From contig OZ316898.1 in the NCBI GenBank assembly GCA_973895155.1, positions 8,481,079-8,545,078 of the forward strand: DNA of 64,000 nt, in the 5' to 3' direction. This DNA comes from Marsupella aquatica (lineage: Eukaryota > Plantae > Marchantiophyta). Below, piece by piece: positions 4,921 through 63,300 of the stretch. Both the position numbers and the translations under genes were made by a program. A model generated the notes under the pieces. It made no database searches and was not told the origin of the DNA. It saw nothing but the letters and a program-made list of their open reading frames with translations. Every line of letters starts with the position of its first letter. Position 1 is the first letter of the stretch.

Positions 4921-5363
4921 TCTGAAAGGGATTTTCTCCCTTTACTGTTCTTTGTCTCGACGTTCTTTCTGTAGTTTTGTGAATTTTCCTGCACCGCTTA
5001 CTGTCCTTACATGTAAAAGGACGCGGGGTGTTTTGACAGCGGGGACTCAACACGTGTTGTGCTCTGCTCTCCCCGCTCCTGTCTAGTGGATGCTCGATCC
5101 TCATGTTTATCCTGTTAAGAATTCAAACTAGCTTTTCTCCCCGGGCGAGTAATGCTCTTGGTTGAAGTACTTATGTCTGGTTTGATTCTCGGGGTACTCA
5201 GAGTTCAATATTCAATAGAGGATTCGAAGCTTATTCACTGGAACTCATGGACTCGATGTTTACTATTTTCTGTCTCCAATTCTCACAGCATTGAGTTCCT
5301 CACGTGTATTCTCTTCACGTACTTCCGTGTGCACTTTACCTCGTTTTGATACTCCTGATCATA
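4921..5363 (+). repeat. 5' LTR of copia element 1
   Basis: Direct repeat of 10022-10464; termini TC(TG)...TA. Confidence 0.97.
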
Positions 5364-5435
5364 GGTTACGGGCCTTTATTTGATCAATACTCTCATCATT
5401 TTACCTCTCCCGGCTTCCTTCTTTTGAGGTTTCTC

Positions 5436-10026: not shown

Positions 10027-10464
10027 AAGGGATTTTCTCCCTTTACTGTTCTTTGTCTCGACGTTCTTTCTGTAGTTTTGTGAATTTTCCTGCACCGCTT
10101 ACTGTCCTTACATGTAAAAGGACGCGGGGTGTTTTGACAGCGGGGACTCAACACGTGTTGTGCTCTGCTCTCCCCGCTCCTGTCTAGTGGATGCTCGATC
10201 CTCATGTTTATCCTGTTAAGAATTCAAACTAGCTTTTCTCCCCGGGCGAGTAATGCTCTTGGTTGAAGTACTTATGTCTGGTTTGATTCTCGGGGTACTC
10301 AGAGTTCAATATTCAATAGAGGATTCGAAGCTTATTCACTGGAACTCATGGACTCGATGTTTACTATTTTCTGTCTCCAATTCTCACAGCATTGAGTTCC
10401 TCACGTGTATTCTCTTCACGTACTTCCGTGTGCACTTTACCTCGTTTTGATACTCCTGATCATA
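10022..10464 (+). repeat. 3' LTR of copia element 1
   Basis: TGTGAAAGGG...CTGATCATA, followed by TSD GAGTC. Confidence 0.97.
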
Positions 10465-10788
10465 GAGTCCCTCACCCACTCGGAGTTGTCGTCATGATTA
10501 GCCATCTTCTGGTCAGAACTCCTCGCCAATGCAGCGGCTGAGTCCATGAAGCTTAGGCTGTTCGTCGACTTAGCTGACTGGTGCATCGTGTCAAGATCTT
10601 GCTCCATTGTACTCCTCGTTTGGCAGCTCTCTCTTCCGGCGCATGCATTGGTCGACGCAGCAGTACCGGATGGTAGAGCTGCGCCGTCCAGCAGGTCCGC
10701 CCCATATTACGACTAGGATGGGAAGGACAGGCCCAGCAAATATCTGAGTTCGGACCTGGCACTTTGATGCAAAAAGAAGAAACAGGGG

Positions 10789-11172
10789 ATGGATATTTTG
10801 ATCCCGGCAACCTGCCTTAGGGAAGTGACAGAACGAGGTTTTGTGGGTACGTCTTTGAGTGTACTCTTAGATCCCAGGCTTAATGGTAGCTTTGATGAAG
10901 AGCAGGCGAAGAGGACGCTGAAGGTGGCATTTTGGTGTATTCAAGAAGCACCTGAGGACAGACCCAACATGCGGGAAGTTGTCTTAATGCTGGACGGAAA
11001 GTTGCAGATTTTTGACCCGCCTTCTGTAAGATTTACGGGTTTGAACAAAAGAATCCAAAGCATGGAAAGAGAAAAGTTGCGACGGCTGGCTTTTGGTGAG
11101 ACTACCATCACAGGAGAACAATGCTCTCCATCTTTTATCGCCACTCAGACTGTGGTAGTAAATCCGAGATAA
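10789..11172 (+). pseudogene. C-terminal fragment of a receptor-like Ser/Thr kinase (subdomain XI and tail)
   Basis: LLDPRLNGSFDEEQAKRTLKVAFWCIQEAPEDRPNMREVVLMLDG matches the plant RLK C-lobe end; no upstream kinase subdomains are present. Confidence 0.85.
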
Positions 11173-14100: not shown

Positions 14101-14567
14101 AAGAGGAGTAGCCCCCTCATCCTCATCATCACTACTACTTGCGTCAGCACCCGACCCCTCAGGCTCATCCGAATCCTGCATCCGTACACTTAATCAGTTT
14201 CTACAAATTAAAAAGGGTCATCCATAATGTTGGCATCACAATTAATTAAATCTTGAACACCTAGATACTTACAGTAGCCAACTCGGCATCCACCATCTGA
14301 AAGAGGTACTTTCTCCCATGCTCCATCCCTATCTCAATATGTTTCTTGGATATCTTCCTCTTATATTTCCGGTACTGCCATGCACCATAAAACCAAAAAT
14401 TAAACCCATAGGCTAAACCAAAATTCACAATGCGAGAGGCCTTAGGCCTAGAAAAGTTAAACTACTTTGAAAACAACTCAAATCACATTTGCGAAGCTGA
14501 TGCGTTCACAAAATGCGAAGCCCTAATTTTTGCAAAGGCATTGCGATGGCTTTTGCGATGCGCGTAT

Positions 14568-32135: not shown

Positions 32136-34606
32136 TCAGACCAAAGGCTTCCGGAAAGCAAAAGTACCTGCTTCTCCGTTCGAATTGTGCATATTCATTT
32201 CCGCTGCAGCGGTCATCTGGTCAGATTCCTGGTGCATCATCTCTGTATTGTCTACCATCTCTTGGTCCATCGGCAGGTCTCCATTCTTCGGACTCCAGTT
32301 CGATCCAGTGTGGGTCATTTCTGAATCGTCCCTACGTCCCATCATTTCCGAATCCCTTCGGCTCATGTGCATAGTTCCGGAGGTACTGCGGCTGTCCGCT
32401 CCATTCATGCATGAACTTTGGCCATCAATGATCTTCTCATCACTATGTCCCATGAATTCTGAATCCCTTGGGCTCAAGTGCATGATCTCGGAGGTACTCC
32501 TGCAGTCTGCCCCATTAGTGCATGAACTTCGGCCAGTGATTTCCTGAGCATGCCTACGTTCCATTATTTCTGACTCGTCCCTACGTCCGATCATTTCTGA
32601 ATCCCTCCCGCTCATATGCACGGCCCCGGAGGTCCTCCGGCAGTCAACTCCATTGGTACATGAACTTGCGCCAGTGATCTCCGCGGTGGACCTGGTCAAG
32701 CGGTTCGAGGTCGAGCCCCGCATGTTTGAACTCCTCCTTTCCGCATCAATAGGGCCAAAATGCCCATCTCGACTGGCCTCCATAGCCCCGGCAGCTGTAG
32801 ATTTGGTCATTCCTTAACTTGGTTGGCCATCGGCGAGGTCTCCTGTGTGTTAGCCATCTTCTTTGCAGCTTCATTTATTGCGGAGGTCGTTCTCTCCATC
32901 TTCACCCACTTTGGAGATGACATTATCTCTCGATCATTTCGCGTCCGATGCTGTCTCGCCGCCATGGGTTCCTCATTCTGGGCGATATTTGTGTGACAGT
33001 CACCGTTGCTGCAGGAGCTCATTCTCCCTCGTGTTGTTGATTGCATCGTTTCCATCGATCGGGGGTTGTTGTCGGCCTCGGCCATGCGACAGTCAGCTCC
33101 TCCAAGTCTGCAAGAACTGAGCGATAAGTCATGATTTCTCTGGGAGATGTGCATTTTCTGAGAGCCTTGAAGTTCTCCATCAATAGCAGCGTCGCAGTCA
33201 GCTCCATTCATTCCGGAGCATCTTTCTGCTGCTGTAGAGGAGTCAATTGAATCAGCTTCGAAGTTCCCCGATTGTGAGCCCATATTCATCTCGGCATCTG
33301 GACGCCTAGAGCTAAGGGGCATGGTTTCGTGCTCCATGGCTCTTGAATCCGTCCTATGGCCGGCCCCAAGGCGATCGCTGCTGCTGCCACAGTCTTTTCC
33401 TTGGCAGAAACTTGTAGATGATTGCTGCCGTTCCATCATGTTTCCCATCATTGACCGAGCTGCGTTCGAGTTTCGCATTTTGTGCGAATTAGCACTCGTC
33501 TGCTCCCAGCCTTGCATGTTGGCAGAGTTTCTCACGGTCCTCTCCAAGTCTCCTCGATCTCCTGGGGAGATTGTTCATTTGTTCTGCATCTCCCATCGTC
33601 TCTGATCCAAGTCCCTTCTCGCCGTCAAGATTATTGTGCATCTGACCTGAGTCCATCATACTGTTAGCGTCTCTTGTGCTTTCTAGGTCTCTCCTCCCCT
33701 CTGAGGGCCTAGCGCTGTACGAGTCTTGCATCATTTCTGATTGCTCGTGCTGAGCATTTCCAAGGGCGGCACTACTCCATGATTCGGAATTTCTCAAATT
33801 CGCCGCAGATTCTCCGACTCTGTTTTAGTCCATCATCTGGTTCGTGTCCCTCCTACTCTCAGAGTTCAGCATTTCCTCCAAGTGTCGACTTGACCTCTCA
33901 TGGACCTCCATTGTATCCATTTGTTGCGAGGTCCTCATGTTGTGAGAGTCTTTCAACCCATCTGAGTCCATCATCCTGTCCGAGTTTAGTATCATCTGCG
34001 AGTCTCTCATGCTTTGGGTGTAGCTCATTCCTTCCGAGTCTATCATCTTCTGCGCATCTCTCATTCCGTCCGAGGCTATCATATATTCTGTGCGAGTCTC
34101 TCATCGACATATCAGTCTTTCATTCCCGGCCTGTGAGTCTCTCATCTTCTGTGAGCCTGAGCTCAATCTCTCCGAGGCTCTGGATCTATCCGAATCAATG
34201 TCTCTCATCTTTTCTGCGCTCCACTCTGCTCTAGACTGTGACTCCTGTCTGGTCCGTTGTGACTCCCTCAATCTCTGTGGGTTTCTGATTCTCTTATCAA
34301 TATCACTCATTGTATCTGCTGAGTCTGTGATCCTCTCCGAGTCACTCATCCTGTCCATTCTAGGGTCGTTCATTTTCTCCAACTCACTCAGATGTCTATG
34401 TGCCGCGTCTCTCATCCATTCGGACTTCTCCCTCATCCTGTCGGAGTCTCTCAGGGACGTCTGATCCTCTCTGTCTGTTGGAGTGTAGACTTCAATGCTC
34501 CATATTCATATTTTTGAGCTCAGAGTCCCTCACCGACTCGGAGTTGTCGTCATGATTAGCCATCTTCTGGTCAGAACTCCTCGCCAATGCAGCGGCTGAG
34601 TCCATG
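32136..34606 (-). pseudogene. Second copy of the Met/Ser-rich low-complexity ORF, frameshifted
   Basis: ORFs 34101-34436, 33825-34082, 33489-33797, 32807-33547 and 32136-32810 are homologous to 2545-4829. Confidence 0.6.
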
Positions 34607-34844
34607 AAGCTTAGGCTGTTCGTCGACTTAGCTGACTCGTGCATCGTGTCAAGATCTTGCTCCATTGTACTCCTCGTTTGGCAGCTCTCTCTTCCGGCGC
34701 ATGCATTGGTCGACGCAGCAGTACTGGATGGTAGAGCTGCGCCGTCCAGCAGGTCCGCCCCATATTGCGACTAGGATGGGAAGGACAGGCCCAGCAAATA
34801 TCTGAGTTAGGACCTGGCACTTTGATGCAAAAAGAAGAAACAGG

Positions 34845-35244
34845 GGATGCATATTTCCCGGCAACCTGCCTTCGGGAAGTGACAGAACGAGGTTTTGTGG
34901 GTACGTCTTTGAGTGTACTCTTAGATCCCAGGCTTAATAGTACCTAGCTTTGATGAAGAGCAGGCGAAGAGGACGCTGAATGTGGCATTTTGGTGTATTC
35001 AAGAAGCACCTGAGGACAGACCCAACATGCGGGAAGTTGTCCTAATGCTGGACGGAAAGTTGCAGATTTTGAACCCGCCTTTCTGTAAGATTTGCGGGTT
35101 TGAACAAAAGAATCCAAAGCATGGAAAGAGAAAAGTTGCGATGGCTGGCTTTTGGTGAGACTTTGGTGAGACTACCATCACAGGAGAACAATGCTCTCCA
35201 TCTTTTATCGCCACTCATCTGACTGTGGTAGTAAATCCGAGATA
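34845..35244 (+). pseudogene. Second copy of the RLK C-terminal fragment, with stop and indels
   Basis: Homologous to 10789-11172; stop after LLDPRLNST. Confidence 0.8.
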
Positions 35245-37517
35245 ATACACGATATAGAGCTGCTGAGCAAACGCTGGTCCGACAATGAAGTAGAGTTCGT
35301 GGTTTCGCATGACATTTAGCAGACATACGGCAATCCACGAAAGATACTGGCTTTCTTCTTTATCCGAATCAAAAGCAGGACTAGCAAAGAGAGTCGAGTG
35401 GGTTCTAAACCCTCTAAGCAAATTGCTCTGGTCAGATTGAAAGGCTTGGGTGTACCAGTGCCACATTGTTTGGATGATACTGACTTTGGAGGAAGAAGAG
35501 AGGAATGACAGGGTCAGTATTGTGATGTGCATTCGTACGTGGTTTCTCAGAAGTACAACCTGGCGTCCCATGACTACAAAAATGGTTCCAAGAGCCAGAG
35601 AAACCCAGGATTCAGACCGTCATGTACATAGTTCAACTTCAACTAAGAAATGGGGTATGTAATATAATTGATGTGAGAGGAATTTGGTAGTGGTGCAGAA
35701 GGAGATGCAATGCTGAAGTTTCTACAGGTAAGATTTCTGTTGACCCAAAGGATGCAGAAGGCAATTGTATTTCATTGGAGACCTGTGAAGCGGCGTCTCT
35801 TTGCTGAATTGTAAGGCAGATTACGATCTCCACTAGGCGATTCGTTAGTTTTGAATACTGAGAAATTCAAAATGTTTTGTGGCATGTGGACTTCCAATTA
35901 ACGGGTCTTCTTGATTTGTGCCTTCTTTGCGCTGAATGAAAAGCGACGGAATCGGAAAATTACTACTAGCATAGGGAGGGACTTATGTGCTAATTTCTTC
36001 GCCTAGATTGTGGTGTATTGTTACTGTAGAAGTACGAGTTTAAGAGGGCGGCTGCTTTCTGTCTCATTCCTGAAGTAATCCTTCTAAAGTAATTGTTACA
36101 CTATCTCACTTATGTAAGCCAATGCAGGAGTCAAATGTTACGAGATTATGACAAAATTTACTCTCCAATCTTGAGCGTCCTATTTTTTATTTTAAATGAG
36201 AAGCTTTTACGGCGTTTTCCAAAACAGGGAAAACTCCGAGCCTATCTAGGAGCCAATTATATGAAGGTGTTTTCACTCAACTTTATTCAGGATTGTATAG
36301 CCGTTGTAAGCAGATGTGCGAATGTGTAATGTTTCTCCTGACATGATCTGAATTTTCTTTTCTGTTTCACGTCTCTAACTAGCTACTGGTCTCCTGAACA
36401 ATATAGGCCACTACGGCATTCTCGCTCCTATAGGCAAGATTCTTTGCAAATAGACAGTTCTCAGATTGGCTCCTCCTCTGCCGAAACTCTTTCCATGGAG
36501 CCTAGGCTTTACATTAATGGTGACTGTCTTTCCAGGTGCTCTTTGGCACCATTCTCAAAATGACATCGTGAACTCTTTATTCTAAGAAAGGAACTGTATG
36601 AAGCATTATTTTCCCTGCACAAGCATTCTGTTCTTTTGAATTTATGAAAGAGGGGGATTTCCCCTGGAGTCTCACGAAGAAGATTTATTATATCCCACCT
36701 TACCGCTGTCGACATTTATGGATGTGATGACGACAGACGGAGTCGATGCTGTGTGGATTCCAGCAGCTTTAAGTGTTGGTCATCCTCATCCATACTTTGT
36801 GCCTTGCTCAGCTGTTTAATGTAGATTGATATGCCGAATTTGATCCAGCTATAGATTGATTAATGATATGCGAAGCAGAACGATGCTTGGATGTAATGGC
36901 AATTTACATCGTAATGGCAATTTACATCTGGAATGCCTGCAGAGTTGATGTTGATCTAGCATGTCACACTGACGATCATTACTTGTTGTATCATTATTTG
37001 GACCAAATTTGGTGCATGAGATTCAAGAATTTGTCTGGCTGGTAAAGGGACTTAGTATGAAATTCAAGAACTTGCCTGGCTGGTAAAGGGAATTAGTATG
37101 CACAGGTGGGGAACAAAGAGTAGGTTAATCCAGCAGGGCCCACTGCCCATAGACCTGGCTCTTTAATTAACAAGACGAGTGGAAATGCTCTAATGAGTTA
37201 TATATGACAGTGTAAAGTGCAAATCTGTACCGGGGATAGATACAATCCCCATGGGCAGTGACACCCTTTACACTGTCACTTTTGCATACCTTTCCTCCCG
37301 AGCTTTGTATTTCTTAATTTTTTTAGACCCTAAATTCCTCCCTTGATCAATGTTGAGCGTTAGCATAGGTAATTTGCTGTTAGAAGGGCTTGGTAGAACT
37401 AGCCTCATTTGGCTCACTTTTATTAAAGTTTGAGAATTCAAAGTCACTAATTTTCAAAGATGTCTTTATTGTTTTCTTTTTGTGTTAAACCTAAATGGGG
37501 AGGAAATACATTTAGAC

Positions 37518-38025: not shown

Positions 38026-41000
38026 TGTTGGAGTATTTACAGTAAAGTAAACGCTTGTATTACTGAGAAATTAATGGGCTCAAGGCTTTATACCGTAGAG
38101 CCAAGTAAACAACATGACACATGGCTGCATACTATAAGATTGCATGGCCTACTGCATCCCCCATATATCGATGCATGCAACATGATTTAGTGCATACATC
38201 AAATCTAACCTACTCTATCTACTCTTCCATGTACGCAATCAACTCTAATGCGGTGCGGCTCCTATTATGGTGTGGCGCGGGCTATCAACTCAATTGCAGT
38301 GCGGCACCTATTATGGTGCGGTGCGGCTAGGCACAATTCTAAATAAACTGCTATGCTAAATAAACAACACGTAGTCTAATCAGATATTATTCTGATCGGG
38401 ACACCTCTACGTGATTATAGTGATGAATCAGATCAACATAAGTCATGCTATGTAGTGAGTCACGTACTTTCAACACTTCCATCCGAACTACAATTTCTCA
38501 GAACTAACTACCCCTATGGAAGCTCGCATCCTGCCAAACTGTTCAAAAGGAATAGCCTTGGTGAAAATATCCGCCAATTGTTGGTCCGTGGGTACATATT
38601 GGGGACAGATCTGTTGACCTTGGAATTTGTCACGGACAAAGTGATACTGGACATCTATATGCTTTGTGCGGCGATGAAATTCCGGATTCTTGATGAGCTT
38701 AATTGCACTTTGATTATCTACCATCAATGGTGTTGGAGTCTCTTGCTTCAGCTTCATCCCTTCTAGTAATGTTCTCAACCACATAGCCTCCTTGGTAGCA
38801 GTACAAGCAGACATGTACTCTGCTTCAGTTGTAGAAGTTGCAATGCAACCTTGCTTGGTACTCATCCAAGCAATTGAACCACCATTTAGCATGAAAACAA
38901 ATCCACTCGGACTGGATTTTCTAGTGTTAATGTCAGCAGCATAATCCGCATCACAAAAACCTGTCAGAATGTTTCGAGCTAAATTTGTCTCCCCTCCTAA
39001 ACATATCCCATGGTTGGCAGTACCCTTAAGATATTTAAAGATACGTTTTACCGCCTCCCAATGCTCTATACAAGTATTAGAGCAACAACGAGCAACATTG
39101 CTAACGGCATAAGCAATATCAGGTCGAGTACAAATCATTGCAAACATTAACGACCCTACTGCTTCCTGATATGGTACTTGGCCGAGTACAAATTTTTCAG
39201 ACATTCCTGTACTCAACTTAACATTGGGATCACAAGGAGTAGACACAGGGTGTGCTCTTTCCTGTCCAAACCTCTTCACAATCTCTGAGATGTATCTAGA
39301 CTGATGTAACAGAATGGTATTTGCTACTCTATCTCGGATGACTAGATATCCTACATAATTATCAGCCTCCCTATAAGTAACATCGAGTTGCTACTGAAGA
39401 TAGGATATCATGGCTCGAAGATGCTTGTGATCAGTAGAGCAAGAAAGTCCATCATCCACAAAGATATTAACAATGAGCATAGCTCTTGGTGTCGTACGTA
39501 CACACAAGAATCAGCTATGGTAGGGATCAAATCAAACATTTTCAAAAATTTGTCAAATTTCTGATTCCAAGTTCTAGAGGATTGCTTCAATCCATATAGA
39601 GACCTCTTCAATCGACATACCAGATTTTTGTTTCCCTCCTTCATGTATCCTGTTGGTTGCTCCATGTAGATGGTCTCAAGTAGTTCTCCATTCGTCTTGA
39701 TGTCAAATTGAATCATCTCCATATTTTTGTCAACAGCTATTGCAAAAGTAGTTCTTACTGAATCAAGTTTGACAACAGGTGAGAAAGTCTCATCATAATC
39801 ACTACTGGCCACTTGAGAGTAGCCTTTAGCAACTAGACGAGCTTTGTACTGATCAATTTCTCCATTCGGTTTGTGCTTGGTTTTGTATACCCACTTACAT
39901 TTGATTGCCTTGCGGTCTGGAGGCAACACACATAGCTCCCATGTGTTGTTTTGGATGAGAGCATCGATCTCTTCATTCATAGCTACATCCTTCCAGTGAG
40001 GCAATTTCCATGCATCGGTGAACTGAACAGGATCAGACTGTAAACCAGTAGAAATTTCAAGTGCCTCACTTAACCATGCCTGAGACTTCTTGCTTGTAAA
40101 CTCCACTTCATCAAATCTCTTTGGTGGGATACGTTGATCAGCAGACCTCAAAACCCGATCAGATGTACCTGCATGTGATAATCCAACTTCGTTCTGGTCT
40201 ACTTTTTCGCTAGCTCTCATGGGGCTACGTGAACCCCTACCTGAGCAGCTACCTGAACCCCAATCTGAACTTTGCTACACATTGCTTGGACTCCTAGTGA
40301 GTACAACCTCCAAACTCCCATCTTCATTGGAAATACTCTCTTGATCAACGCTAGATAGAATAGAGGTTGGACTTGATAATTTCTCATCTCCCTCTATTAC
40401 TAGATGGCGAGTCTATTGATTAAGCAGGACTTCATGAAATATTACTTCACGACTTTCTTTGATCCTATCTGAGATAGAATCCCATAATCGATAGGTTGAA
40501 GTATTTTCACAATACCCGACAAATACTAACTTACGGCTCTTCTGGTCAAGTTTCTTCCTGAACTGCTGGGGTACAAGAGTGTAGGCCTCACATCCAAACA
40601 TTCTGAAATGTGCGATAGAAGGTTTCTTCCCTCACCAAGCTTCATAGCTTGTCTTTTCTTGGAGACTCCTGGTGGGTAGACGATTCAGTGTGTGTACAGC
40701 AATGTGAATTGCCTCTGCCCATAATCGAATAGGAGTTCCAAATGCATACAACATACTTTGTGCACTCTTGATAATGGTAAGATTGTCTTGCTCAGCTCTC
40801 CCATTCTGCTCAGGTGAGTATGGTGTTGTCACCTCATGAGTGATACCAACATCTTCAAGGTATTGAGAGAAAGATTTGCTCACATATTCACCTCCCCTAT
40901 CAGTGCGAAGTGTTTTGATTTTTTGACCTATGTCTCTAAAGACCTGTTTTTCAAGCTTCTGAAAACAGGAAAAGACTTCTGACTTTTTCTTTATGAAATA

Positions 41001-42507
41001 TACATAACGGTAACCGCTATGGTCGTCTTTAAAAAGGACATAATAACAGGCTCCACCCAAACTTCTAACACTCATTGGGCCGCATACATCTGAGTGAAAG
41101 AACTCACCAGCTTGCTTAGCACGTTCATGAGAACTGGGGTTTGGGAATGTACGGCGGTGTTGTTTCCCAAGTACACATGATCCTTCACAAAATGGATCAG
41201 CAGGCTCTTTCAGCTCCGTAGGTAAACCATCTACTAGATTTTCTCTCTGCATCTTTTGTAGAGCTGGAAGGTTAGCATGACCACAATGATAGTGCCACAG
41301 CAGGATATTGTCAAGATCTGTTGTTGATGTCGTGGACATAACAGCATGTGCCTGACTAGATTGTTGAACCACCTCAAGCTGAAGTTTGTACAACTTTCCA
41401 TCTCTCCTGCCACTCAAAACCTCAACTCCACCTTCATCTTGAACACCACATCCATGTCTATGGTACGTAGTGATCATTCCATTATCAGCGGCTTGTCCAA
41501 TGGAAAACAAATTCCTCCTTAGCTTGGGAACGTAAAGAACATTCTGAAGAATACCAGAATAAACTTTACCTTATAGTCCTTTTGTGACAACTTTGATGTC
41601 TCCGCATCCTTCAACCCATAGCTGGTGGTTGTCGTCAACTTGTACTGACCATGTATGTGGCGGTACAGACCGAAATGTATGGAAATATGACCTCATGCTA
41701 GTCATGTGCTCACTTGCACCACCATCTGCATACCAAACTTTAGTATCGTTGTTGATGATGAAAGGACAGCAAAAGCAATGCTCTCAGTGGTGGAGACATT
41801 AGCTTCACTTTGTTGTGGCGTGATGTCATTGGCTGCACTCCTTCCGTTGTCGTTTGAATTGCCTTTGCTCCTACATTCTCGTGCCCAATGTCCCTTGGGA
41901 TTGTTGGAATTGGTCTTTTTCTTTTGATCAGCTATAGACCCTCTTCGGGACATTTTCTCAGTATCAGAATAGGCTCTGTTCTGATTACTGAAAAATGCCC
42001 TAGCATCATCTTGACTTACTGCCTCACCTGCCGGGTACAATGTCTCTTCCTTCAGAAGTCGACTTGTGAGCTTGTCAACTGTTTGCTGATCAGAAGGTAC
42101 ATTGTCCCAAGCTACCAACACATGTCGATACGATGCTGCAAGACTACAAATTATATTAGTGATAATTGTAGAATCAGTGACTGTCTCTCCCAAATCATTG
42201 AGCTGTCGTGCCATGGCCTCAATCTTGCTAATGTGAGTAGCCATATCATCTTCCGCCTGGAGCTTGTGCTCAAAGAATCTTTGTTGCAGCAAATGTCGAT
42301 TCTCTGCAGCATTCTGATCGTGAAGAGTACTAAGTCTTGTCCACATTTGATTAGAAGATTTACAGTTCACTAGGCGCTGTATAATCTTCTCATGAAGTGC
42401 GGCACAAATGTACATCTTCGCTGCCTTGTCCTTAGTGTTCCATTCTATAGTACTCGCTGCTGGAGCACCCGGAGCAGGCTTGGCTTCACTACATCAGGAA
42501 ATTGGTA
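38026..42507 (-). mobile_element. Degenerate Ty1/copia element 2: 3' LTR 38026-38475 plus RH-RT-IN-PR-gag, cut within gag at 42507
   Basis: LTR TGTTGG...TTCAACA; RH GFCDADYAAD/TEAEY/LADIFTK; RT YKARLVAKG/LYGLKQSSRTW; IN LRTDRGGEY/EQNGRAE; PR WYADGGASEHMT; gag. Multiple frameshifts; no 5' LTR in the window. Confidence 0.95.
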
Positions 42508-43210
42508 CCCATACTATTCAACAATGTTTCATGATGTTTTCATCACAATGTGTAAGTAGTGTTGATTTACACACAAAGTACTTCGACGATGATTCATCAT
42601 TGAAATTTTCAGCATTGAATGGGGTGTTTTGACCACAAATATTTTCCATGTTTAATCATTGTAGTGTCATCATGGATGACTTCATTACATTTTCATTGTT
42701 GATTGACATCACTTTTTATACAATGAAAATTCTGACAATGCTTAAGCATGGACTCATTGTAAAACCAACAACAATTTTCATCACATTTTCATTGTATTTT
42801 CAGCATGTGTTGAACGGGGTGTTCAACTTGGCAATAGTATCCAGTGTTCTTATGATGAATCATCATAAAATTATCATCATGGAACTAATATGGTTGTGGA
42901 GTGGACATCCATGTTGTTACATTGTTGAATCAGTATGTTAGAGTGGTTGAAAAGCTTTGATTTCAATGATATTTCATGGTGTATCCTTGAGTTATTCAAA
43001 TGGTGTCATCCATTATGCAATAAATTTTCAATGTTGTTTCCACAATGAAAAACTATATCATGAATCAATCATGGTTTTATAGTGCCATATCATGATGATT
43101 CATCATGGAATCATTGCAATATCATTGTTTTGTTAATGCGGAATTTGAAATAGATTTGCACTGTTTCATTGCCTTTATGACCATTTCAATGTCTAATCAT
43201 TGTCATTTGT
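42508..43210 (+). mobile_element. Putative left terminus and subterminal repeat region of a large CMC/Plavaka-type DNA transposon
   Basis: Abrupt switch from copia gag to CCCATACTATTCAACAATG, then ~700 bp of AT-rich CAT/ATG short direct and inverted motifs; a near-inverted copy of the first ~20 nt lies at ~42920-42938. Confidence 0.55.
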
Positions 43211-49600: not shown

Positions 49601-50724
49601 CCGCTTCAATTACAAGCCCCCTCGGTAACCATGGTAACTAACTCAGGTTAACTTTTGTCTACTTTGATGATACAATCGACAGAAACACCTAGTCAACCGC
49701 GAAGCACCAGTAGCTCAACATCCGGTGTACTTGCACCTACTCGCACGCACGTCCCTCCTGAATGGCGGTAGTCTACGTTCGAAGATTGAGGCAAGGAGCT
49801 TCTCTATATCTGCGGTGCAACTTTCTTCTTCTAAAGACTTGAAAGCTCTGGGGCTCTTCATCTCATTTAACTCCGGTCTGAACTTTCCTTCTTGCACCTT
49901 CTTTCGTAATCAAAGAATGCAGAGAAGAGAGAATAAGTCCAATGATGCGTGAAGAGATCATATAGCATTAGCGATACCCTGACTGATGCCTTCAAACAAA
50001 GGGCCAATCAGTCGTGCACCAATTGATGCTGGAGGCTCACTCTGCGATTGCAAAGCTTACGATCAGTAGTGTTGAGTACATAATTAACGCTCTTTAAGGG
50101 TGACACCCGCTCAATTTTGGTCTGTATCTCTGCGATGCATTTATTTGTAAGAGGTGCACTGGGCCATTACCAAGTCTGCACTCGAACAACAGAGTTTGCC
50201 CTTCAAACGAAGTTGGGTCGATTACCAAGTCGGAGTGGACAACAAAAGCTCCAGGTTCACTCTTCAATGGAGGCGTACTATCCGGTGATAATGTTGATTT
50301 ATCACTACATATGCACGAAACTGAACAGGATCGACGTTAATCATTCCCAGCCAGGTTCTCTAGTTCATTAGGAATGGTCCAAAAACTTATACAATGATTG
50401 TATAGGACTTGCAAAACTTGTATCCTGACCTCGTAGGAAAGGCTCAAATGACAAAGGGAGACTCATTGGGCAATGCAACCGTAGACAGTTCGTGACTGCG
50501 GTCTCCACCCTTGTGATCAAATCTTGAGCTTTGGGGAGGATTTAGTATATCAAAATCACATTGAGACTCCGAGTGAGACTAACTTAAATCAGGTCAATTG
50601 GTATTTACCATTTGCAACAATATAACAGGACCACAAGATTTGGCAATCATACCTTCTATACAGCACGGGGACTATGCCTGCTCGGTACACAACAATCTGT
50701 TGGAAAGCAGGTTGTGAGTGTTAA

Positions 50725-51420
50725 AGTGCTGCAAAGGGTAGTTGCACCAGCCACCAGCGTTGTTGGGATGCGCGTGGTTTTGGGGGCAGAAGTTGGTTGC
50801 GGTGATCTGGATAGAACGCTGGCCGTAGAGACACCATCTCTGGGAGTTGCATTTGATCTCAAAACAAGCTCCGCAACTAAGTCCATTGTCGAAGAGAGTG
50901 GTGCTCAAAGCTGTTGTGTGCGGGGCTGTGTGAGTCCCGTAACCAGTGTGGTAGAGATTCCCATATCCACATGCTCCACCTGATTTCATTTCAATCCAAA
51001 TTTACAAATTCAAGCATGTTAAGATCTTACTGAAAGCTGAGCAACCTCAGCTGGTTCTAGGCTGAAGACCGCAACTTAGAAATGACCGCTTCTTTCAATG
51101 CATCTCACAACGAGTTTCCAGGAATGAAATCTACAATTATTACTGAGAGGCTCCTACAAATACTTTAGTCCAGTCGATGTTGAATCAATGTGGTCAACCA
51201 CTAGCAGCACCTTAACCTTAATTGTAACTATAACTCACTTGCTTCTCGTAGTTTACAAAAGAAGATTTGTAAAATGCACCTTGTGTGCCTGTCGCGTCAG
51301 AGCCCCCATAGAATGTGGCATGGGCTTGTTGCAAGCCGTGTGCAGTGGTGAACATGTAACCCAGGCTCACAAGCGCCACCAAAAACAGCCTCGTTTCCCT
51401 CCCAAAACCGCACGACATCC
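50725..51420 (-). pseudogene. EXPA: Truncated alpha-expansin (exon 1 ~51420-51280, exon 2 50979-~50725)
   Basis: AHATFYGGSDATGTQG|[47 protein letters not shown] with the conserved intron 1 position; breaks off at the HFD motif, and the CBM63 domain is absent. Confidence 0.93.
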
Positions 51421-51737
51421 TGTGAGCCAGAGGAGGAAATTCAAACAAATTATTTTAAGCATGGTCGCTGACAGAGGCAAAATGTTCAAGCCAAACATGA
51501 AACGAACAATCCTGGGAGCTACGCCTCTGTCTTTATAAGAAGTCAAAATGTCGTATGTGAGTCTAGTCTTGGGTTTTGAGGAGCGGAAGTTTGAAGAGTC
51601 CTTTGAAGAGTCCCCCAAGATCTACCAATACATTGTCTCAGCTGAGATCACCTTCTCAACCTACTGTAGCAGCTCTCCTCGCGCAATGAAACCGGAGCGA
51701 AGAGATGCCCATCGGATCAAAACCAAGGGAGCCTGGC

Positions 51738-51930
51738 GCCAAGGCGGCCCGGGAGGCAAGGGGGAGCCCAGCAGCGAGGCGGCCCGGGAGGCAGCCGGGA
51801 GCCCGGCAGCAAGGCGGCCAGGGAGGCAAGGGGGGAGTCCGGCGGCAAGGCGGCCCGGGAGACAACGGGGGAGCCCCTGCAACAAGGCGGCCCGGGAGGC
51901 AAGGGGGGAGCCCCAGCTGCAAGGCGACCT
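51738..51930 (+). repeat. GC-rich ~36 bp minisatellite, ~5 copies
   Basis: CAAGGCGGCCCGGGAGGCAAGGGGGAGCCC-like units. Confidence 0.85.
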
Positions 51931-52632: not shown

Positions 52633-53078
52633 AAAGAACCTTTCCATTCGGAGCAAGAGGGGGCGATGGCTCCATCTTCTTCTTCTTCTATTCTTGCTCA
52701 TGAACGTCGACATCATCGCTGGACAGCGGAACGGTCTTCACAAGTTCTTTGTACTTGAGAATGTAAAGCATCTCGAGGTAGCGGCGCGTTTCTTGTCGCC
52801 CGAGCTTGGAGACGTACTTCTAGAAGCTATAGACGCCAGCGAGGGTCATCAACCTCTCTGCGTACATCGACTGTATATGCACTCAAGTCCGGCATCTGAA
52901 AGGATCTTCCAGTAGTTCTCTTTGCTCTGGCACCGCTTGAAGAAGTCGACCATCTTCTTGGTCGCCTCGTCGCTGCGGTAAGGATTGATGTGGAATCCTG
53001 ATATCCCGTCTTCAATGATCTTTGCCGGTCCTCCGTGGCAGGTCGCAAACATTGGCAACCCGCACACCATTGCCTCTC
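52633..53078 (-). pseudogene. SUS: Sucrose synthase C-terminal fragment
   Basis: EAMVCGLPMFATCHGGPAKIIEDGISGFHINPY..LECIYSR, small deletion, then [44 protein letters not shown]; no introns within the fragment. Confidence 0.93.
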
Positions 53079-53326
53079 ACAACTTTTAGATGCTTTCTTA
53101 GCAGGGGCAAAACAAAATAATAGTGTTAAGAAATCAATTCCAGATTGTGAGATTGTGTCCATTGTAGATTAGTAATACTCCAGAAAATAGTTGCTTAGTT
53201 CCAAGGCATTATTTTTTACTCACTAGGAGAATGTTCAAAGATGAGATTTGAAGCGACTAAGAAGAGTCACGTACATAGAGTCACCTACATCATCAGCCCC
53301 AACGATTACCCAATTCTTCATTCTAA

Positions 53327-54364
53327 CTAGGTACTGATTTGTGACTTCCAAAGATTCTCTGCAAAATTAGCTTCATGACTAAAAAACACCACTCCAAATC
53401 TAGTCCCAGATGTAATGCTGGAGATTGAGTGTTGTAGAAGGGTTGATCGGAGAAATACCACGTCTCCAGGTTTCAAACCAAATTGAAAACCAAGCTGCGG
53501 AACTTGTAAATATCCACCTTCAAAATCTCCAAATGCTAGGTTTGCAACCCAGCCATCAAGAGCATCATCTTTATCTCTATGGGGACCAGCGTTGAGTTGT
53601 GTATTGATTGCCATCCCTAGAAAACAATTTCAGCTGGTTGTGTGCATCACAGATGCAGCTCCATTCCCAAAAGCATCAAAAAGTGCTTTGTATCTTTCAT
53701 AGTTCTGCCAATCAATACATTCATAAAGTGCTCCAACTGCCTGTGTAATCGGTGTAAATTTGTTTAAAAATGTTGAGACCAAATTCATCTTGTCCCCAAA
53801 ACCAATAATGTGTCGAGACAACACCGCAGAGAAAGTTTTACGACCAATTCCATGCCAAAATGCCAAATGATGAATCCCAGAGTTAAGAGGGATGTGTTTC
53901 CCCTTAAATCTCCCATTTGTGAGCGTTGGACGATTTGGTGGGTACGCTGTCACAAGCTCTTGAAGAGCTTCTAATCCTTGGAAGGTAGGGTCATTCTTGA
54001 AAGGTCTTTGTAGGGCATTTTTCAGAAAGTAGAACAATGGCTTATCATTAGAATCCTTAATGATAATATCTTCACCATGCCACACTGGTAGATCAACAAT
54101 GGAAAAGAATTGATGCTTTTGTTGAATCAAGTCTTCAACAGTGGTGTCGATTTTGTTTACCTGAAATTTTCCCAATAAAAACCTGAAAATCTTCCAAAAC
54201 CTTGGATTCTGCTCCCATTCGTAAGTTGCAGATGTTTTAGGTCGTCTAGAACCTAATCCTTCACATTTCTCAAAGTCTTCATCTCGCTTCCTCTTTCCAG
54301 GTTGCCCTGAAAAATAATCCACATTCTTTCGATCTTCTTTTACTTCTTTCTGGTTTGATTTCAT
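53327..54364 (-). pseudogene. TET/JBP-family 2-oxoglutarate/Fe(II) dioxygenase, ~345 codons, intronless, single in-frame TGA at 53632-53630
   Basis: ORFs 53630-54364 and 53327-53614 are in one frame (HTTS*NCFLGMAINTQLNAGPHRDKDD). HxDxxD, GDFEGGYLQVPQL, PGDVVFLRSTLLQH (distal His) and RFGVVFFSH (R-x5-aromatic-x-H, as in TET2 RISLVFYQH). Confidence 0.85.
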
Positions 54365-54466
54365 TTTTTTTAAATACTTGGTCCTAGTTGAGATGTACAG
54401 TTATACTCCCCTCAACTAGAATGTTAACGCAGTTACGTACACAGGTGACCAAGTATTTAAAAAAAA
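54364..54466. repeat. Perfect 20 bp inverted repeat with a nested 9 bp inverted repeat, abutting the TET/JBP start codon
   Basis: TTTTTTTTAAATACTTGGTC (54364-54383) / GACCAAGTATTTAAAAAAAA (54447-54466); inner CTAGTTGAG / CTCAACTAG. Confidence 0.85.
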
Positions 54467-54559
54467 CTGCAAAGAGAGAATTGAGTGAAGTAAACAAAGA
54501 TTTTGATTGTCCTTATGCGGATTGGATCACGCTAATCTATTCAGAACTCTGCAAAGATA

Positions 54560-54960
54560 AGTGAAAAAGAAAGGCTTTGTCAAAGAACAGATCACATAGC
54601 ACACAAACCAAAATCTATCGACAATTCTGCAAATCTATGTAGATTTCTACACAGCAACTGAAAAGAAAAGTTTTCGTAAAAGAACAGATCATAGAGTCAC
54701 TCCAACCAAAAGATTGTTCGTTGTCAGCCTTTACATAAAAAATGTGCATTAGCCTCTGTAGAGTAAACTTAAAAGCAAATTTTTGCAAAAGAACAGATCA
54801 AAGAGTCACGACCACCAAAAAAAATTGTCCAGATTTCTACACAAATAGTTGAAAAGGAAAGTTTTTGTAAAAGAACAGATTGAAGAGTTACTCAGACCAA
54901 AAGATTAATATTGTTCGTTGTCAGCCTTTGCATATAAAATTGCATTAAACTCTGTAAAGT
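54560..54960 (+). repeat. Degenerate ~95 bp tandem repeats upstream of the TET/JBP ORF
   Basis: AAAGAACAGAT core at ~54582, 54678, 54788 and 54870; TTGTTCGTTGTCAGCCTTT occurs twice. Confidence 0.7.
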
Positions 54961-57900
54961 GCCAGACTTTGTACAGTGTTGGACTTTGCATGAAAGAATG
55001 AATGAAAGACAAGAAACTGACAAGCTTTCTTGGGAACTGATGGTCCACTTAGGGCACAAAAGAAAACTTCTTGGAATAAGCAATATAAGTACTTTGTGAA
55101 ATGGATTCTGAATTGTTTCCTTCAAGCTTTTCACTTGCAGGCTGTGTGGAATCTAGCTTCTCAATAGCCATAGCTATAGATGTCGGCCCCACTGTATTCC
55201 AAGCAACATCCTTGTTGCTTTAATTTGATTCTCTTCCAAGTCTATTACGTCCGTAGTCCTCTCCAATCTGCTAAGCCCTTTTGAATTAGTCCTCTTTGAC
55301 TTTGCTGAACCTTAGAGATGCTAAATGTTTCCAATCCCCGTAGCCATACTAGTGTCTCACATGGCCCCACTATTCTATGGTGTCTGGCCCCACTATTCTA
55401 TGGTGTCTCACACTTATATTTGCCGCACACTGGTTTTTGCTCGCCATCAATAAAGGCTTCACTTTAGACACTTGAGCATTAATAAAACTAGACAGTTGAA
55501 CGCTAATAAAACTAGCCTGATTACCCGTTGAAACCCGTTATTTTACCTTAGATAAAGATGAAGGCAAAATAAAATCTTCCAAAAAAAATTAATTCTATGG
55601 TGTCTCACACTTATATTTGCTGCATCCCGCATTTTGCTCCCCTTGACTTTGTTCTTATTTAAGAGTCCAGTTGTGTCCTTATTTGGAGTTATGGTAAATT
55701 GGATGTAATTTGGATCATCCTCAACCTTCAAATGTTTTTTTTTAATCAATTTTTCAAATGCAAAAACAAATTTTAAGTTTCTGTTTTACTTAAAGATTTG
55801 CATGAGAAGCAAAAGATTTGCATGAGAACATTGTTGAAAACCAAATCAGGGTAAAAACGTTTTTCAGCACAAATACCAACACATGAAAGTTTGATAGTTT
55901 GAAGCGCGCGCTACTCTCATTAATTGTGGTCTGTGCTAGTCTACATTAGGCAGTTCTGTTATCTTCAGCTACACACTCAAGAACTTTGCATGTAACACCC
56001 AAATGTCTAGACCTTTATGAGGCCAGGAAAGGTGAAGTGACAGGTGCGTGTAATTTTTAAGGAGATAAATAAGAATTGCTTTTTTGAAGACAAATGTTAT
56101 GCTATGGAGTAGTTTACAGGGTAAGTCTGCAATCAGTCTACAAGGGCCAGTTACCTTCCAGTTTAAAAGTTCCTTGCTAGTTTAAGGATTTGCGTATAAT
56201 GTTTTCAGGTTCAGGAATTTAGTTCCAATATGCCAGTTATGGACACCTCATTTATTATATTATATTGTCGCCACATATAGGGGTTTCCAAGTACATGGGT
56301 TTGCGTCTGTTCGATTTGTCCACTGACGTTGGAGATCACTCACCTCATTACACACCCCCGTTGGAGATCACTCACCTCATCACTCACCTCTTGAGGTCAG
56401 TTGGGGTGAGCAGCAGGTTCTTGTTATAGGCTGGTTAACTTCTGCGGTTCTGAGTGTTAGTGACCTGATGTGTAGCTCTCATCAACGATTTGCAGCATCG
56501 ATTGCTCTGGTGACCTGATTTGAATGCTGTTGGCTGAGGCGAGTTGAGGCGAGGCAAGGTGAGAGAGGACAAGGAAGGAAAGCAGTGAGCATGTGTCTCA
56601 ACTTTTGCCGCGGAGGTCCGCCAGGCACCATCCAGGACCAGGTTTCCGCTTTGGTTCGATTCGTTCCCTTCTCGAGGGAGTGGGAGTGGCAGAAAGGGTT
56701 GACTGCTGCTTCTCTTTGTTGGACGGGATCCACGCCTGTGTGTCTCCCAGGTAATGCACTGCGTCTCTTATCCCTCTCTTCTCCTTGTGTCTACTCTTTC
56801 AATCTCCTCTATTCTCTACTATACGCCACTGCACACTAATCTCCTTCTGCTAAGGATTTGCTAGGTCAAGTTCAAGTTCCAGGCCACCTTAGATATGGGA
56901 GCTAACTGAGTCAAGCTATTGAGGTCTGCGCGTGAGCAGATCAAGAGAGTGTCTTCCATTTCTACTGGATTAGTAGTCTTGATCAACCAAGATGGCAGGC
57001 TCCCGTATTAATTCGTAGGTTGACCATCGATCCTTATCTAACAGCAAAACTGACAAACTGTGTGCCTCCTGCGTCTAAAGCTATAGCTGCAGTGGAATTG
57101 ATAGTGGCCTTGATGATATTGCCCAAACGCGCGTGTCAATGTGAGCAGACTATTCCTGCAATGCAAGTGTAATATGTCTGGCTACTGTAGAGCTCGAGTA
57201 CACTATTGTAGAGCAGGTCCATTGAAGAATTGATACTTGAATGTGTACAATCTAGAGAATGAATCAGATAAGTAATCATACTAGATTCGTTCTGCGAGTT
57301 GCCACGACATACCTCAATAAGGGCTCCGCATAGGACAAGTATTAAAAAACAAGTAGCTAAGTAAGCGTATAAGAAATTAAGGGAGCTTGCCTACTGACAG
57401 AATGCTTTCTCCTAAGCCTTGAATGAGGGGGAGAGTAATTTAATTGTTATTACAAGGATTGATGGTCAGTTCCAGCCAACCGGTATGAAGTTTTGTCCTA
57501 CAGCTTCAATTCAATGAACTTTGGTTCACATAGTTACATGAGATAAAAAAAACATAGGTTGCCTGATTACCAAAGACTAGCATTGCACTTCAAGCTCCCT
57601 TCCACTCAACGGAGTATATTGTCCTGCAGGTCAGCTTGTCAACAACATTGCAAGGGAGGCACCAATGTGGCATATATTGCACAGGAGGCTATCAACCGGA
57701 CAACTCGTCAAAGAAGCTCTGGTCAAAATGCAAACTATCCCCAGAGTTCTTGAAGATAGGTTAAGACTTTTCCTGGTGCGTAAGTGCGACGATGTCTGCT
57801 TACGCAGAGCTAAATATCCATTTCAGTTTTTTTTTCACTTTAGCACGGTAAAGATTATGAAGAAAGCTCGGGTCCATACATCTCAGCCCCAAGCAACTGT

Positions 57901-59131: not shown

Positions 59132-60337
59132 GTATTCAACTCTCTCTTTCAGTATGAGCAGTCAGAGTGACAAATCCATTGTGCTTGCGTTGACTTGCTT
59201 TCTTGCATTTAGTCTGGGTCACTGGTTAATCTTCGTCCATGCGAACTGCACAGTAGTCATGGCCTTTGGGAATAATTTGTAAAGATCGAATATAAGTTTT
59301 GCCCTGATAGCAGGTTTAGAATCTGACTGTTGTGGGTTCAAATCTACGTCATAGCAGAAATTCCATTTCTCTTGAAATGACTGCAACAAAGTGGCTTTCT
59401 GCTGGGGCTGATCCATGCTAAACGAGATGCCCCTCTTTGGTTTCTCATCTTGGCATCTTGGATTTATTTGTTGAGACCACTATAGTGTCTCTATCGGAAT
59501 ATGATTTGAAATATACATAATCACTTCATTTGTGGTTTGCAGGCCCCAACACAAATTGAGAAGCTGATTGCAGAAAGAAAACTCTATGCTACTGTTCAGC
59601 TTCGTATTCAATCCATCAATATGTAGGATAGGGACCGAGGGGATTCAATCTGTAAGTCAGTCGTAGGAGTGTCAGATCCCCATGTTTTTAGAGCATCTGC
59701 ATACCTAGAAGAGCAAGGGGCATCGTCTCCTCACACCAGCACAATTTCTCACGTACCTTGGACGTGCAAAGTTGTACCTTTGACTTTGCAAACTTGTACG
59801 TGCAAAGTTGTACCTTGGATGTGCAAAGTGTGCAAAGTTGCATTGTGGCCTAGACAAGGATTCTTCCAACACCTTCTTAACAAACTTCAGTAGTGTCCTG
59901 AGATTATGGATTGCAGTCGCAGTCCTAAGAAGTTTGTCTGTTTCCACATGTGCAGTGAGAGGAACAACATGGAGAAGTTGGCGCTTGCTGTTGTCTCACA
60001 TCTGCCTACTTCCATTCTTTACATGCATGATTTAACTGGAGAATGTGGCTCGTCAGCTGCTAAACAGGTGCTAGCTGACATTATGATTGGAGGTATTTCA
60101 TGCCAAGAGACCCTTGTTGACATTTTTATGTTTATGTTGACTTGCGCGCTGTTGTGTAACTATCTCAGTCTCTACTTTGATAAATCCCACTAGTCTGTCG
60201 TTAGGGAGCTGTAAACTATGTTGGATGTTTCAGTTTTAGTGTGTATTTGAGAATTAGTTGATTTGATTTCCTGATTGTTCTGTTGGCTCATTCACTGTGA
60301 TCATGTGTCCAGTGCAGGGGTTTTAGTCACTGAAACA

Positions 60338-63300
60338 ATGATGGTTTATGATTGTGACACTTGTGGGTGTATTGGTTTTAGAAATCCTGGGGCCCTAGCT
60401 TCTCATAAGACAACCAGTCGAGCATGTAAACTTGCAGCTAAATGTCGCAAGGAGAGTAATGATGATGTGAGATCTCAAGTAGGTGTCCAAGAACAACCTT
60501 CTGGTTTTGAACCTCAAATGGCTCATGAATATATTAGCATGATAGATCCATTATATTCTTCTATGAGTACGCCAGTTGCCAATCATGTGGAAGATGTATT
60601 ATGCACTCCAGTAAGTGAATTCTACAAAGCTAGTCAACCAGCAGATCGTTTTGATTCCACATTACACCTTGTAGCCTTCATTCGACAATGTAGGAATACT
60701 ATGGGACTGTCTATGAAAGACACTAGAAGACTATTAAGTCTTCTCTTCCATACAGAGTTCTCACTCACAAACATAGATGTGAAAAATGTGAGTGACCTTG
60801 TCAAGTATGAGAAGAGAATTGCAAGTACTCACACTGTTACATGGAAGCAAGTGATAGTTCGCCCGAAAGGCTTCCATATACCGGAGCTTGTGCTACATTA
60901 TCAAGATCCAGTGGATGTCCTGTGTAGACTGTTTTCGAACGTGAGTAACAAAGAGAATTTTAAAGTTGGTCCATCCCAGCCAGGTCTGACAAGATGTTAC
61001 AGAAGTCCAGACACTGGAGATTGGTGGAGACAAATGCAGGTGAGGACCCTTCAGTCTTCACTGTGCACTTATGTCAGTGAGTTTCGAATGGACTTCAGTC
61101 AACGGTGTACTAACCTTTCATTTTCCTTTGACACAGGATAAAATTGATGAGAAATGTCCTGGTGGAGTCATCGCAGCAATCATACTTTATTCTGATCAAA
61201 CTGGGCTATCAAACAACCAGAGAGTATCTGGTTATCCATTAATGATATCGCTGGCAAATATTGAGTGTGTCGGGAGGCGAGAGGAGTCGGGTAATGCTTT
61301 GCTTGCAATTCTTCCCACGTATGGAGCTTCTGATCCAGACTATACAAATTCTAAGCATCCTACTCGCCTCAAGATCTCTTTACTCCACAAGTGCTTGACC
61401 ATCATATTGGCGCCCTTGAAGGCATTAAGTTACACGTAAGTGACATGCAGTTTTGATGAAGATGCCAGTCTTGATGACACATGTACTCTTATCTATTGAA
61501 ATTCTGAAATTGTATACCTCTAATGCAAACATTCTTTTGTCCAGTGGTTTGCCCTTGGAAGATCCTTGGGGATGTCAAAGATGGGTGTTTCCTCTTCTGT
61601 ATGGATATGTTGGAGATCATCCAGAAACCTGCAAAGTGACTTGCACTTTTGATTCAAATCGCTGCAATTTCCCCTGCAGTGTTTGTGTATGCCCTAAAGA
61701 ACAGCTTAGTGTTGTTACAGTCACACATGAGTATCGTACTCAGAATCAAATGACAAGTGTTTATAATGAGATGGTTATGGCATCTACATGTGTGACTGAT
61801 GAAAGGGCGAAAAGAGAGTCTGTGCATCCTGTCCAGGTATGCTCATTTTGTATGGTGTTGAGTCTGTCAATCTTGTTGCAATGCTTTACCTTTTTACATG
61901 TCTTTTTCTTGTATCCTGACATCACATTAAAGCCGTTGTTTATATCTGCAGTGTGCGCTTTGGGGATTTTTTGGTGGAGAGACCATCTTAGGAAATCCTT
62001 ACAGATCGGTGCATCCAGACAAGATGCACCAGTTTGAGTTAGGTTTGTTCAAAACTTTCATTGGAATTTTGAAAGATATGGCAAGTGAAACTCCTAGAGT
62101 TACTTTTAAACAAAAGCCACTTGAGATCTTGGATGAAAGGATGACAGTGATTGGAGATAACCATCGATATCCAGAGTTCAGATTACTGGCATGCAAAGGA
62201 AGGACAGGCTATTTCACATCTAGTGCAACATTTCAAGCATTCGAGCACAGATCTGTGCTTCAAGTTATCATACCATTGTTATTGGGAGTCTATCCAAATA
62301 CTGTCGTCCAAGTTGCTATTAGCATGTGGAAATGGTATTCTGTTGCTTTCAGGACCAACGAGCATACAGAGGAGACACTTTCTAAAATGGATGCATTAAT
62401 GTCTGAGTAAGTATCTTTTTGATTTACCTTGCTAAAAGACATGTTGGAATCACAAATGATGTTTATGATGAATTCATTTTAACACCAGACTTAATTTTGC
62501 AAGATACTAATGTTCATATTTGGTTGTTCATAGGATGGTGAGGAAATTGATTACTGTTGTAGGGAGATATCAAAAATCAGAGTTTGAGATTGTTAAGATT
62601 CACGCAATGAATCATCTTTCTGACTCCATTAGGAGATCTGGGATTCCGTGTGAATATTCTACCAACCTGTACGAGCATCTGCACATTTTGTTAATGAAAA
62701 TTCCATACCGTGCTAGTAACAAGAAAGATTTTGCAAAGCAAATGACCCGGCATCACCAGAGATTGCTCGCTATTGGCAGAAAGACTTCTACATCCGTCGA
62801 GGTTGAAGTCTCTCATGATAGGGAAACAACCTTGGACAAAGTATGTTTCAAAATGGATGCAAGATGCATGTTGAATTTCATTTGTGCAAGGTTTCCATAA
62901 ACTTTGAACTCATTTGTTGGCCAGGTATAAGCAGCTATTTTGCTGTGATTTGCAGGTGTGAAAACAGGAGAAAATATTCTCATGGGCTCAAGAATTTGCT
63001 TCCAAATGGAATGGCTACAAAGGCTTCCCGAAGACATACCTTCAAGTGGAAGAGAACTGTTACATGCACAACCAGAGATCAAAGCGAATCTGATAATCAC
63101 TCTAGAAACGTACTCTAGAGAAAATGATTTACAGAAGTTGAAGGTACACATTTGTCTTGTGATATTGCATTTATTTAACTACAATTGTCAATGACATCAA
63201 ATATTAAGCTTTTAGACTCTTTGGCTGCACATTAACATATTTATCCTTCCCTCTTGGATGACAGGTACTTGAAGTGAAGAACGGGGTGGCTATCCCAGCA

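Follow-up and report, generated by a model that had tools for sequence, protein, structure and literature searches.

How does a gene for a DNA base dioxygenase of the TET/JBP family come to lie in the genome of a liverwort, and in what state has it survived there? To our knowledge, the removal of 5-methylcytosine in land plants is attributed solely to DME/ROS1 glycosylases, and TET enzymes are held to be missing from them. Among the papers searched, those that mention JBP together with Marchantia or Physcomitrella, a selection that covers the bryophytes as a group less than cleanly, report no such gene. It is the host that is unusual here: the TET/JBP family is known, as are its fold and its occurrence with transposons. 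Our analysis concerns a stretch of 64,000 nucleotides from Marsupella aquatica (hereafter the window), in which a first-pass annotation had recognized a broken gene of this kind. We consider it likely that the locus represents a gene, inactivated not long ago, for a small single-domain TET/JBP dioxygenase of about 345 amino acids, of ascomycete ancestry, residing in a land-plant nuclear genome and probably within a Plavaka-type element.

The gene occupies positions 54364-53327 of the minus strand as a single frame of 346 codons, running from an ATG at 54364 to a terminal TAG at 53329-53327, without introns and with one internal TGA at codon 245 (53630-53632) that lies ahead of all catalytic residues. 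This stop separates an N-terminal piece of 244 amino acids (53633-54364), made up of a basic, probably disordered head and the N-terminal half of the TET fold, from a C-terminal piece of 100 amino acids (53330-53629), which holds the catalytic half of the double-stranded beta-helix and matches Pfam Tet_JBP, NgTet1 and CcTet. The open reading frame (ORF) past the stop, 95 amino acids long from its own ATG and 100 when counted from the stop, shares its frame with the 244-amino-acid ORF. Only one GT..AG span crosses the TGA; with 34 nucleotides it is too short and, not being a multiple of three, out of frame, so that an intron cannot account for the stop. No second copy of the TET gene was found elsewhere within the 64-kb window.

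Within the basic head, the patch GKRKRD (residues 23-28; 54281-54298) has the sequence of a possible nuclear localisation signal. The catalytic piece carries HRD (residues 262-264; 53573-53581), nearly invariant and aligned to HKD of NgTet1, in which His262 and Asp264 are the putative HxD iron ligands. The distal iron ligand would be His312 of LLQH (53429-53431), as judged from the NgTet1 alignment and from the alignment of relatives, and Arg322 of TRFGVVFFSH (53399-53401), again nearly invariant, is the predicted 2-oxoglutarate (2OG)-binding residue, being aligned to the arginine of GWRIGLVYFAH in NgTet1. The two same-frame ORFs, the lone TGA, the intronless protein of about 345 amino acids and the motifs HRD, LLQH and RFGVVFFSH, all of which had been noted in the first-pass annotation, are indeed present.

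Family membership was examined with sequence profiles and with structures. In Pfam, the C-terminal piece matched a single family, Tet_JBP (PF12851), at 43.2 bits (cutoff 34.9). Against PDB sequences the same piece found NgTet1 (E 1e-8) and CcTet (E 0.03), and a profile built from the gene together with its relatives found these two at E 4e-12 and 2e-8, respectively; no other match in these PDB searches was significant. HMMER retrieved 600 matches to the C-terminal piece at E<=1e-3 among 1.84 billion representatives. Given the 43.2 bits, the NgTet1 E value of 1e-8 and these 600 matches, the TET/JBP match is not due to chance. The N-terminal piece alone gave no Pfam match, no PDB sequence match and no match in a word-indexed homologue search. 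In the alignment with NgTet1, the HxD pair, the distal His and the 2OG-binding Arg all coincide with residues of the window protein. D234, F295 and H297 of NgTet1 are matched as well, by the window Asp three residues past HxD and, in the final strand, by a Phe and a His; these NgTet1 residues reportedly contact the flipped 5-methylcytosine base in the NgTet1 structure.

The fold search was made with an AlphaFold2 model not of the broken window protein but of its best relative, P0163, an intact protein of 342 amino acids that is 50% identical to the read-through protein over 325 residues (34-row alignment, pLDDT 89.9). In Foldseek, this model matched CcTet (6e-17), NgTet1 (2e-11), human TET2 (2e-9) and CMD1 (5e-9), whereas AlkB and FTO reached only about 1e-5. 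The gene is a member of the TET/JBP family, nearer to the solved TETs than to AlkB, FTO or other 2OG oxygenases. The TET/JBP arrangement that had been proposed from motifs is thus borne out by the profile and structure comparisons called for at the time, with Tet_JBP above its cutoff and NgTet1, CcTet, TET2 and CMD1 as the best folds; a best match to AlkB, P4H or another 2OG family, named beforehand as the outcome that would speak against it, did not occur.

The closest parallels among characterized proteins show both likenesses and differences. NgTet1 of Naegleria gruberi (PDB 4lt5/5cg8) is, like the window protein, a single-domain protein of about 320-345 amino acids that lacks a Cys-rich/CXXC module, and the similarity of the catalytic halves (E 1e-8) includes aligned HxD, distal His and Arg ligands. 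However, NgTet1 has no HMMER-detectable similarity to the N-terminal 244 residues, the basic head belongs to the window protein, the fold match of NgTet1 to the P0163 model is weaker than that of CcTet, and the window copy is broken. CcTet of Coprinopsis cinerea (PDB 7vpn/8jkk), a fungal TET bifunctional for 5mC and 6mA that stems from transposon-associated TET expansions, is the best structural match of the P0163 model (Foldseek E 6e-17, TM 0.59); yet it is only about 15% identical and comes from a basidiomycete, whereas the window gene falls in an ascomycete clade. CMD1 of Chlamydomonas and the mammalian TET1-3 proteins share the superfamily fold of the P0163 model (Foldseek about 5e-9 and 2e-9) but are much larger and bear extra domains. 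CMD1 uses vitamin C instead of 2OG; the 2OG-binding Arg is conserved in the window protein.

Does the gene reside in plant DNA at all? It is flanked by copia elements, an expansin gene and, 250 bp downstream, the decayed 3' remnant of a sucrose synthase gene (52691-53076, minus strand) with a frameshift and an in-frame TAG. The best named match of the copia polyprotein is from the liverwort Calypogeia fissa, at 50% identity. In its composition (GC 39.6%, GC3 33%, CpG o/e 0.40) the TET ORF resembles its surroundings, and its fungal relatives have 47-50% GC. The stretch was present in sequencing runs of two organisms from two studies, and a second version, diverged by about 5%, occurred among the contigs of those runs. 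Because the flanks are plant DNA, GC3 is 33% and CpG is depleted, contamination is unlikely, and we regard the gene as resident plant nuclear DNA. The notion that a fungal contaminant, from an endophyte or a lichen fungus, was mis-joined to plant sequence draws on the fact that the closest relatives are all fungal or metagenomic. We find it barely credible, since the nearest fungal protein is only 50% identical, the base composition is plant-like and depleted of CpG, the stretch recurs in the runs of two organisms and the window is free of fungal genes. In addition, a contig from an independent run agreed without a single difference over 52946-53167, which comprises part of the sucrose-synthase fragment (52946-53076) and about the first 90 bp of the spacer, ending short of the TET gene itself.

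The condition of the resident gene was assessed against its intact relatives of 330-380 amino acids, with the two pieces searched apart and the read-through protein aligned with an X at the stop position. Both pieces align end to end with these relatives in non-overlapping columns, and exactly one column is left for the stop. In most close relatives this column holds Arg, within the motif TTSRNCFLG, which makes CGA>TGA, a transition at a CpG, the simplest plausible change behind the stop; this is the substitution that the first-pass annotation had favoured. As all metal and co-substrate ligands come after the stop, the predicted 244-residue product would not be an oxygenase: as judged from its sequence it is catalytically dead, and the reading frame of the assembled sequence is not intact. 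Decay past the stop appears slight. Of the 34 columns that at least 85% of 32 relatives conserve, the window copy keeps 33, and of the 60 that are invariant in its nine nearest relatives it keeps 55. Since the conserved columns are almost all kept, the inactivation looks recent, as had been suggested before the relatives were compared.

The same retention of conserved residues, together with an ORF that is otherwise complete from ATG to TAG, is what one would expect if the gene were intact and functional and the TGA were an error in the consensus or the assembly, or else an allele confined to one strain. We judge this distinctly improbable. Zero-difference contigs nearby otherwise confirm the assembly, the neighbouring genes are decayed as well, and the CpG o/e of 0.40 speaks of many C>T losses of the same kind. 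Moreover, the terminal branch of the window gene is about 2-3 times longer than the branches of its relatives.

From where, then, did the plant obtain the gene? None of the relatives examined bears a plant or algal name. Those with names come from metagenome-assembled genomes (MAGs) of the lichen-forming ascomycetes Watsoniomyces, Peltula and Phylliscum. The hosts of the closest clade members were deduced not from names but from neighbouring genes. The 226-kb contig that carries P0173, the sister of P0163, also bears a HET-domain gene and a gene of the TPR_10 NLR type, and P0167 has a HET gene as neighbour; genes of both kinds are hallmarks of filamentous ascomycetes. Wherever the host of a relative was identifiable, through a lichen-fungus MAG or a contig with HET/NLR genes, it was an ascomycete. 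A close relative, P0006, has an XS-domain gene next to it; XS domains are mostly found in plants, and the hosts of some clade members are less certain for this reason.

In the maximum-likelihood tree, the window gene fell inside a clade with 96/96 support together with P0163, P0173 and the group of P0001, a protein 38% identical to the N-terminal piece over 207 residues. P0167 stood just outside, with the named Lichinomycetes further out. An approximately unbiased (AU) test disfavoured the tree that united the 17 non-plant ingroup sequences without the window gene, at a marginal p of 0.031 and for a group that had been chosen with a first tree already at hand. The terminal branch of the window gene is long (0.84) and could distort its placement. 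Because the window gene nests inside the ascomycete-bearing clade, transfer from an ascomycete to the plant lineage is on balance favoured by these sequences, and the earlier suggestion of a fungal-like, possibly horizontally acquired enzyme gains substance from a clade whose identifiable members are ascomycetes.

Vertical descent would instead make the gene a survivor of an ancient TET/JBP lineage of streptophytes or Archaeplastida, perhaps one that rode on old Plavaka elements and was lost in most land plants. In its favour are the XS-domain gene beside one close relative and the Plavaka elements reported from red algae, chlorophytes, streptophyte algae and moss (PMC13519894). We nevertheless think such descent very improbable: the window gene lies within, not beside, a clade with ascomycete members, and none of the relatives examined is a named protein of a plant or alga.

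Among the metagenome contigs of the P0163 cluster, two (L006, GC 38%; L007, GC 45%) carry the closest relatives as fragments of 90, 79 and 267 amino acids. The DNA of both is AT-rich and gene-poor, and the other relatives lie on DNA of about 50% GC. These contigs might represent RIP-mutated repeats of an ascomycete.

We then considered what might have carried the gene. A Plavaka transposase domain (PF18759) is spread over three reading frames, owing to introns or frameshifts, at 60275-62037 on the plus strand; it scored 18.4, 49.4 and 36.3 bits against a cutoff of 26.3, the latter two at 61071-62037. The transposase and the TET gene are 6 kb apart and oriented away from each other. A candidate left end of PlavakaB type lies on the plus strand at 42492-43000, where CATCA at 42492-42496 is followed by a cluster of CATCA/TGATG motifs, according to the rule that PlavakaB elements, which form the one Plavaka lineage known to carry TET genes in fungi, have CATCA...TGATG termini (PMC12730594). 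The 500 bp past 42492 contain nine such motifs and are the densest in the window, where the mean is 1.6 per 500 bp. At this very point, adjoining the CATCA, a copia gag ORF on the minus strand is broken off at 42493 without its N-terminal part. The interval from 42400 to 64000 bears no resemblance to the rest of the window. Nowhere in the window did we find a right terminus matching the 42492 end, a target-site duplication (TSD) or an inverted-repeat pair linking the TET gene to the transposase. Contig depth rises several-fold over 53854-55335, and contigs from other copies have deletion-type joints that skip 477-518 nucleotides inside the gene.

On these grounds the TET gene may be cargo of a Plavaka-type transposon whose right end would lie beyond the window. 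The transposase need not itself be fungal, given that Plavaka elements are known from algae and moss (PMC13519894).

Alternatively, the gene may stand alone as a host gene, whether inherited or taken over from a fungus, which came to lie in transposon-rich DNA and decayed as dispensable, the nearness of Plavaka being coincidental. The 6-kb separation, the divergent orientation and the lack of a terminal inverted repeat (TIR) or TSD joining the gene to the transposase all suit this explanation, as do the fungal contigs with the closest relatives, on which no Plavaka was found next to TET. Decayed host-gene fragments between the candidate terminus at 42492 and the TET gene likewise count against cargo; on the other hand, decay of the gene fragments in this interval is just what captured cargo would undergo. 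A stand-alone gene also fits poorly with the multi-copy state of the upstream region and of a portion of the gene itself, with the deletion-type joints of the other copies, and with a PlavakaB-like terminus candidate at 42492 for which no right end appears before the window closes. We rate a stand-alone gene as a serious but rather unlikely alternative, and carriage by a Plavaka-type element as the probable one.

TET-bearing DNA transposons of fungi, reportedly described by Iyer in 2014 and treated by Kojima (2025; PMC12730594), comprise Kyakuja/Dileera/Zisupton, EnSpm, PlavakaB and Helitron elements; Kojima distinguishes PU, AG and PE types of their TETs. The window locus resembles them in having a TET/JBP gene near a Plavaka transposase, a candidate CATCA terminus and subterminal DNA rich in CATCA/TGATG, and the role proposed for the fungal elements, escape from silencing by methylation, could apply here too. 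It differs in its land-plant host, in boundaries that are not closed and in the decayed plant gene fragments within the interval.

What would the intact protein have done? We propose that it would enter the nucleus and bring a modified base, in all likelihood 5-methylcytosine, by flipping into its HxD...H iron centre. There the base would be oxidised to 5hmC, 5fC or 5caC, erasing the methylation mark. By analogy with the transposon-borne TETs of fungi, the most likely role would be to act on 5mC in the DNA of the carrier itself, here probably a Plavaka-type element exceeding 21 kb, and so to shield it from methylation-based silencing. In the window copy the TGA, most simply a CGA>TGA change at a CpG, would end the protein at residue 244, upstream of the iron and 2OG ligands. 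Being broken, this copy is evidence of history and not of function.

A canonical, Pfam-positive TET/JBP gene in a liverwort chromosome shows that land plants did receive a member of the family. This gene can be traced back to ascomycetes, a lineage with lichen-forming species among its members, and arrival on a transposon is possible. If intact and active copies exist, they would offer a natural test of TET-type oxidation within a plant methylation system and would constitute a clear fungus-to-plant transfer of an epigenetic counter-defence. A broader proposal, which we advance as speculative and unlikely as it stands, is that liverworts host a family of giant Plavaka-type transposons with ascomycete-derived TET/JBP genes whose intact copies oxidise 5-methylcytosine and so escape plant silencing. 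If true, liverworts would provide the first example of a TET-bearing transposon beyond the fungi and, in addition, the first land-plant case of a functional TET-type 5mC oxidase.

Several features of the surroundings deserve mention in their own right. In the sucrose-synthase fragment the frame shifts past ...ECIYSR, and the TAG occupies a position at which relatives have Trp (YSF*KYVSKL). We considered whether a live sucrose synthase gene might harbour the TET gene in one of its introns and rejected this, as the upstream exon is absent and the fragment is frameshifted and has an in-frame stop. In contigs of other runs, the fragment extends upstream into coding sequence (GLTVV) that the window lacks; an intact sucrose-synthase paralogue therefore probably exists elsewhere. 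The alpha-expansin-like gene (50592-51454, minus strand) has an apparent frameshift in its QHF(D)xSQPAFQQI motif and is probably a pseudogene or a captured fragment.

Upstream, a palindrome of 103 nucleotides with perfect 20-nucleotide arms and an inner inverted repeat touches the TET ATG (54364-54466). Contig depth in that bin was very high in run X4, and the palindrome is for this reason probably a MITE-like repeat. Beyond it, tandem or dispersed repeats of about 100-197 nucleotides (54562-54960) vary between runs. On the other side of the gene, a GC-rich unit some 35-37 nucleotides long occurs five times in tandem at 51732-51913, with ORFs rich in Pro, Gly, Ala and Arg on both strands.

Farther away, the bin 14001-14500 is second in density of CATCA/TGATG motifs, with seven, and is possibly another terminus of Plavaka or CACTA type. 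A 365-residue ORF on the minus strand (15498-16595) has a weak ATG16-like coiled-coil match just under the Pfam cutoff. Copia-type LTR retrotransposons with gag, integrase and RVT_2 occupy 5304-9824 (plus strand) and 38488-42493 (minus strand), the gag of the second being cut at 42493. Finally, 34000-37093 shares direct repeats of 2.6 kb and 0.5 kb, 95% identical, with 4399-4920 and 10464-13008, which are probably LTRs or else copies from a single retroelement family.
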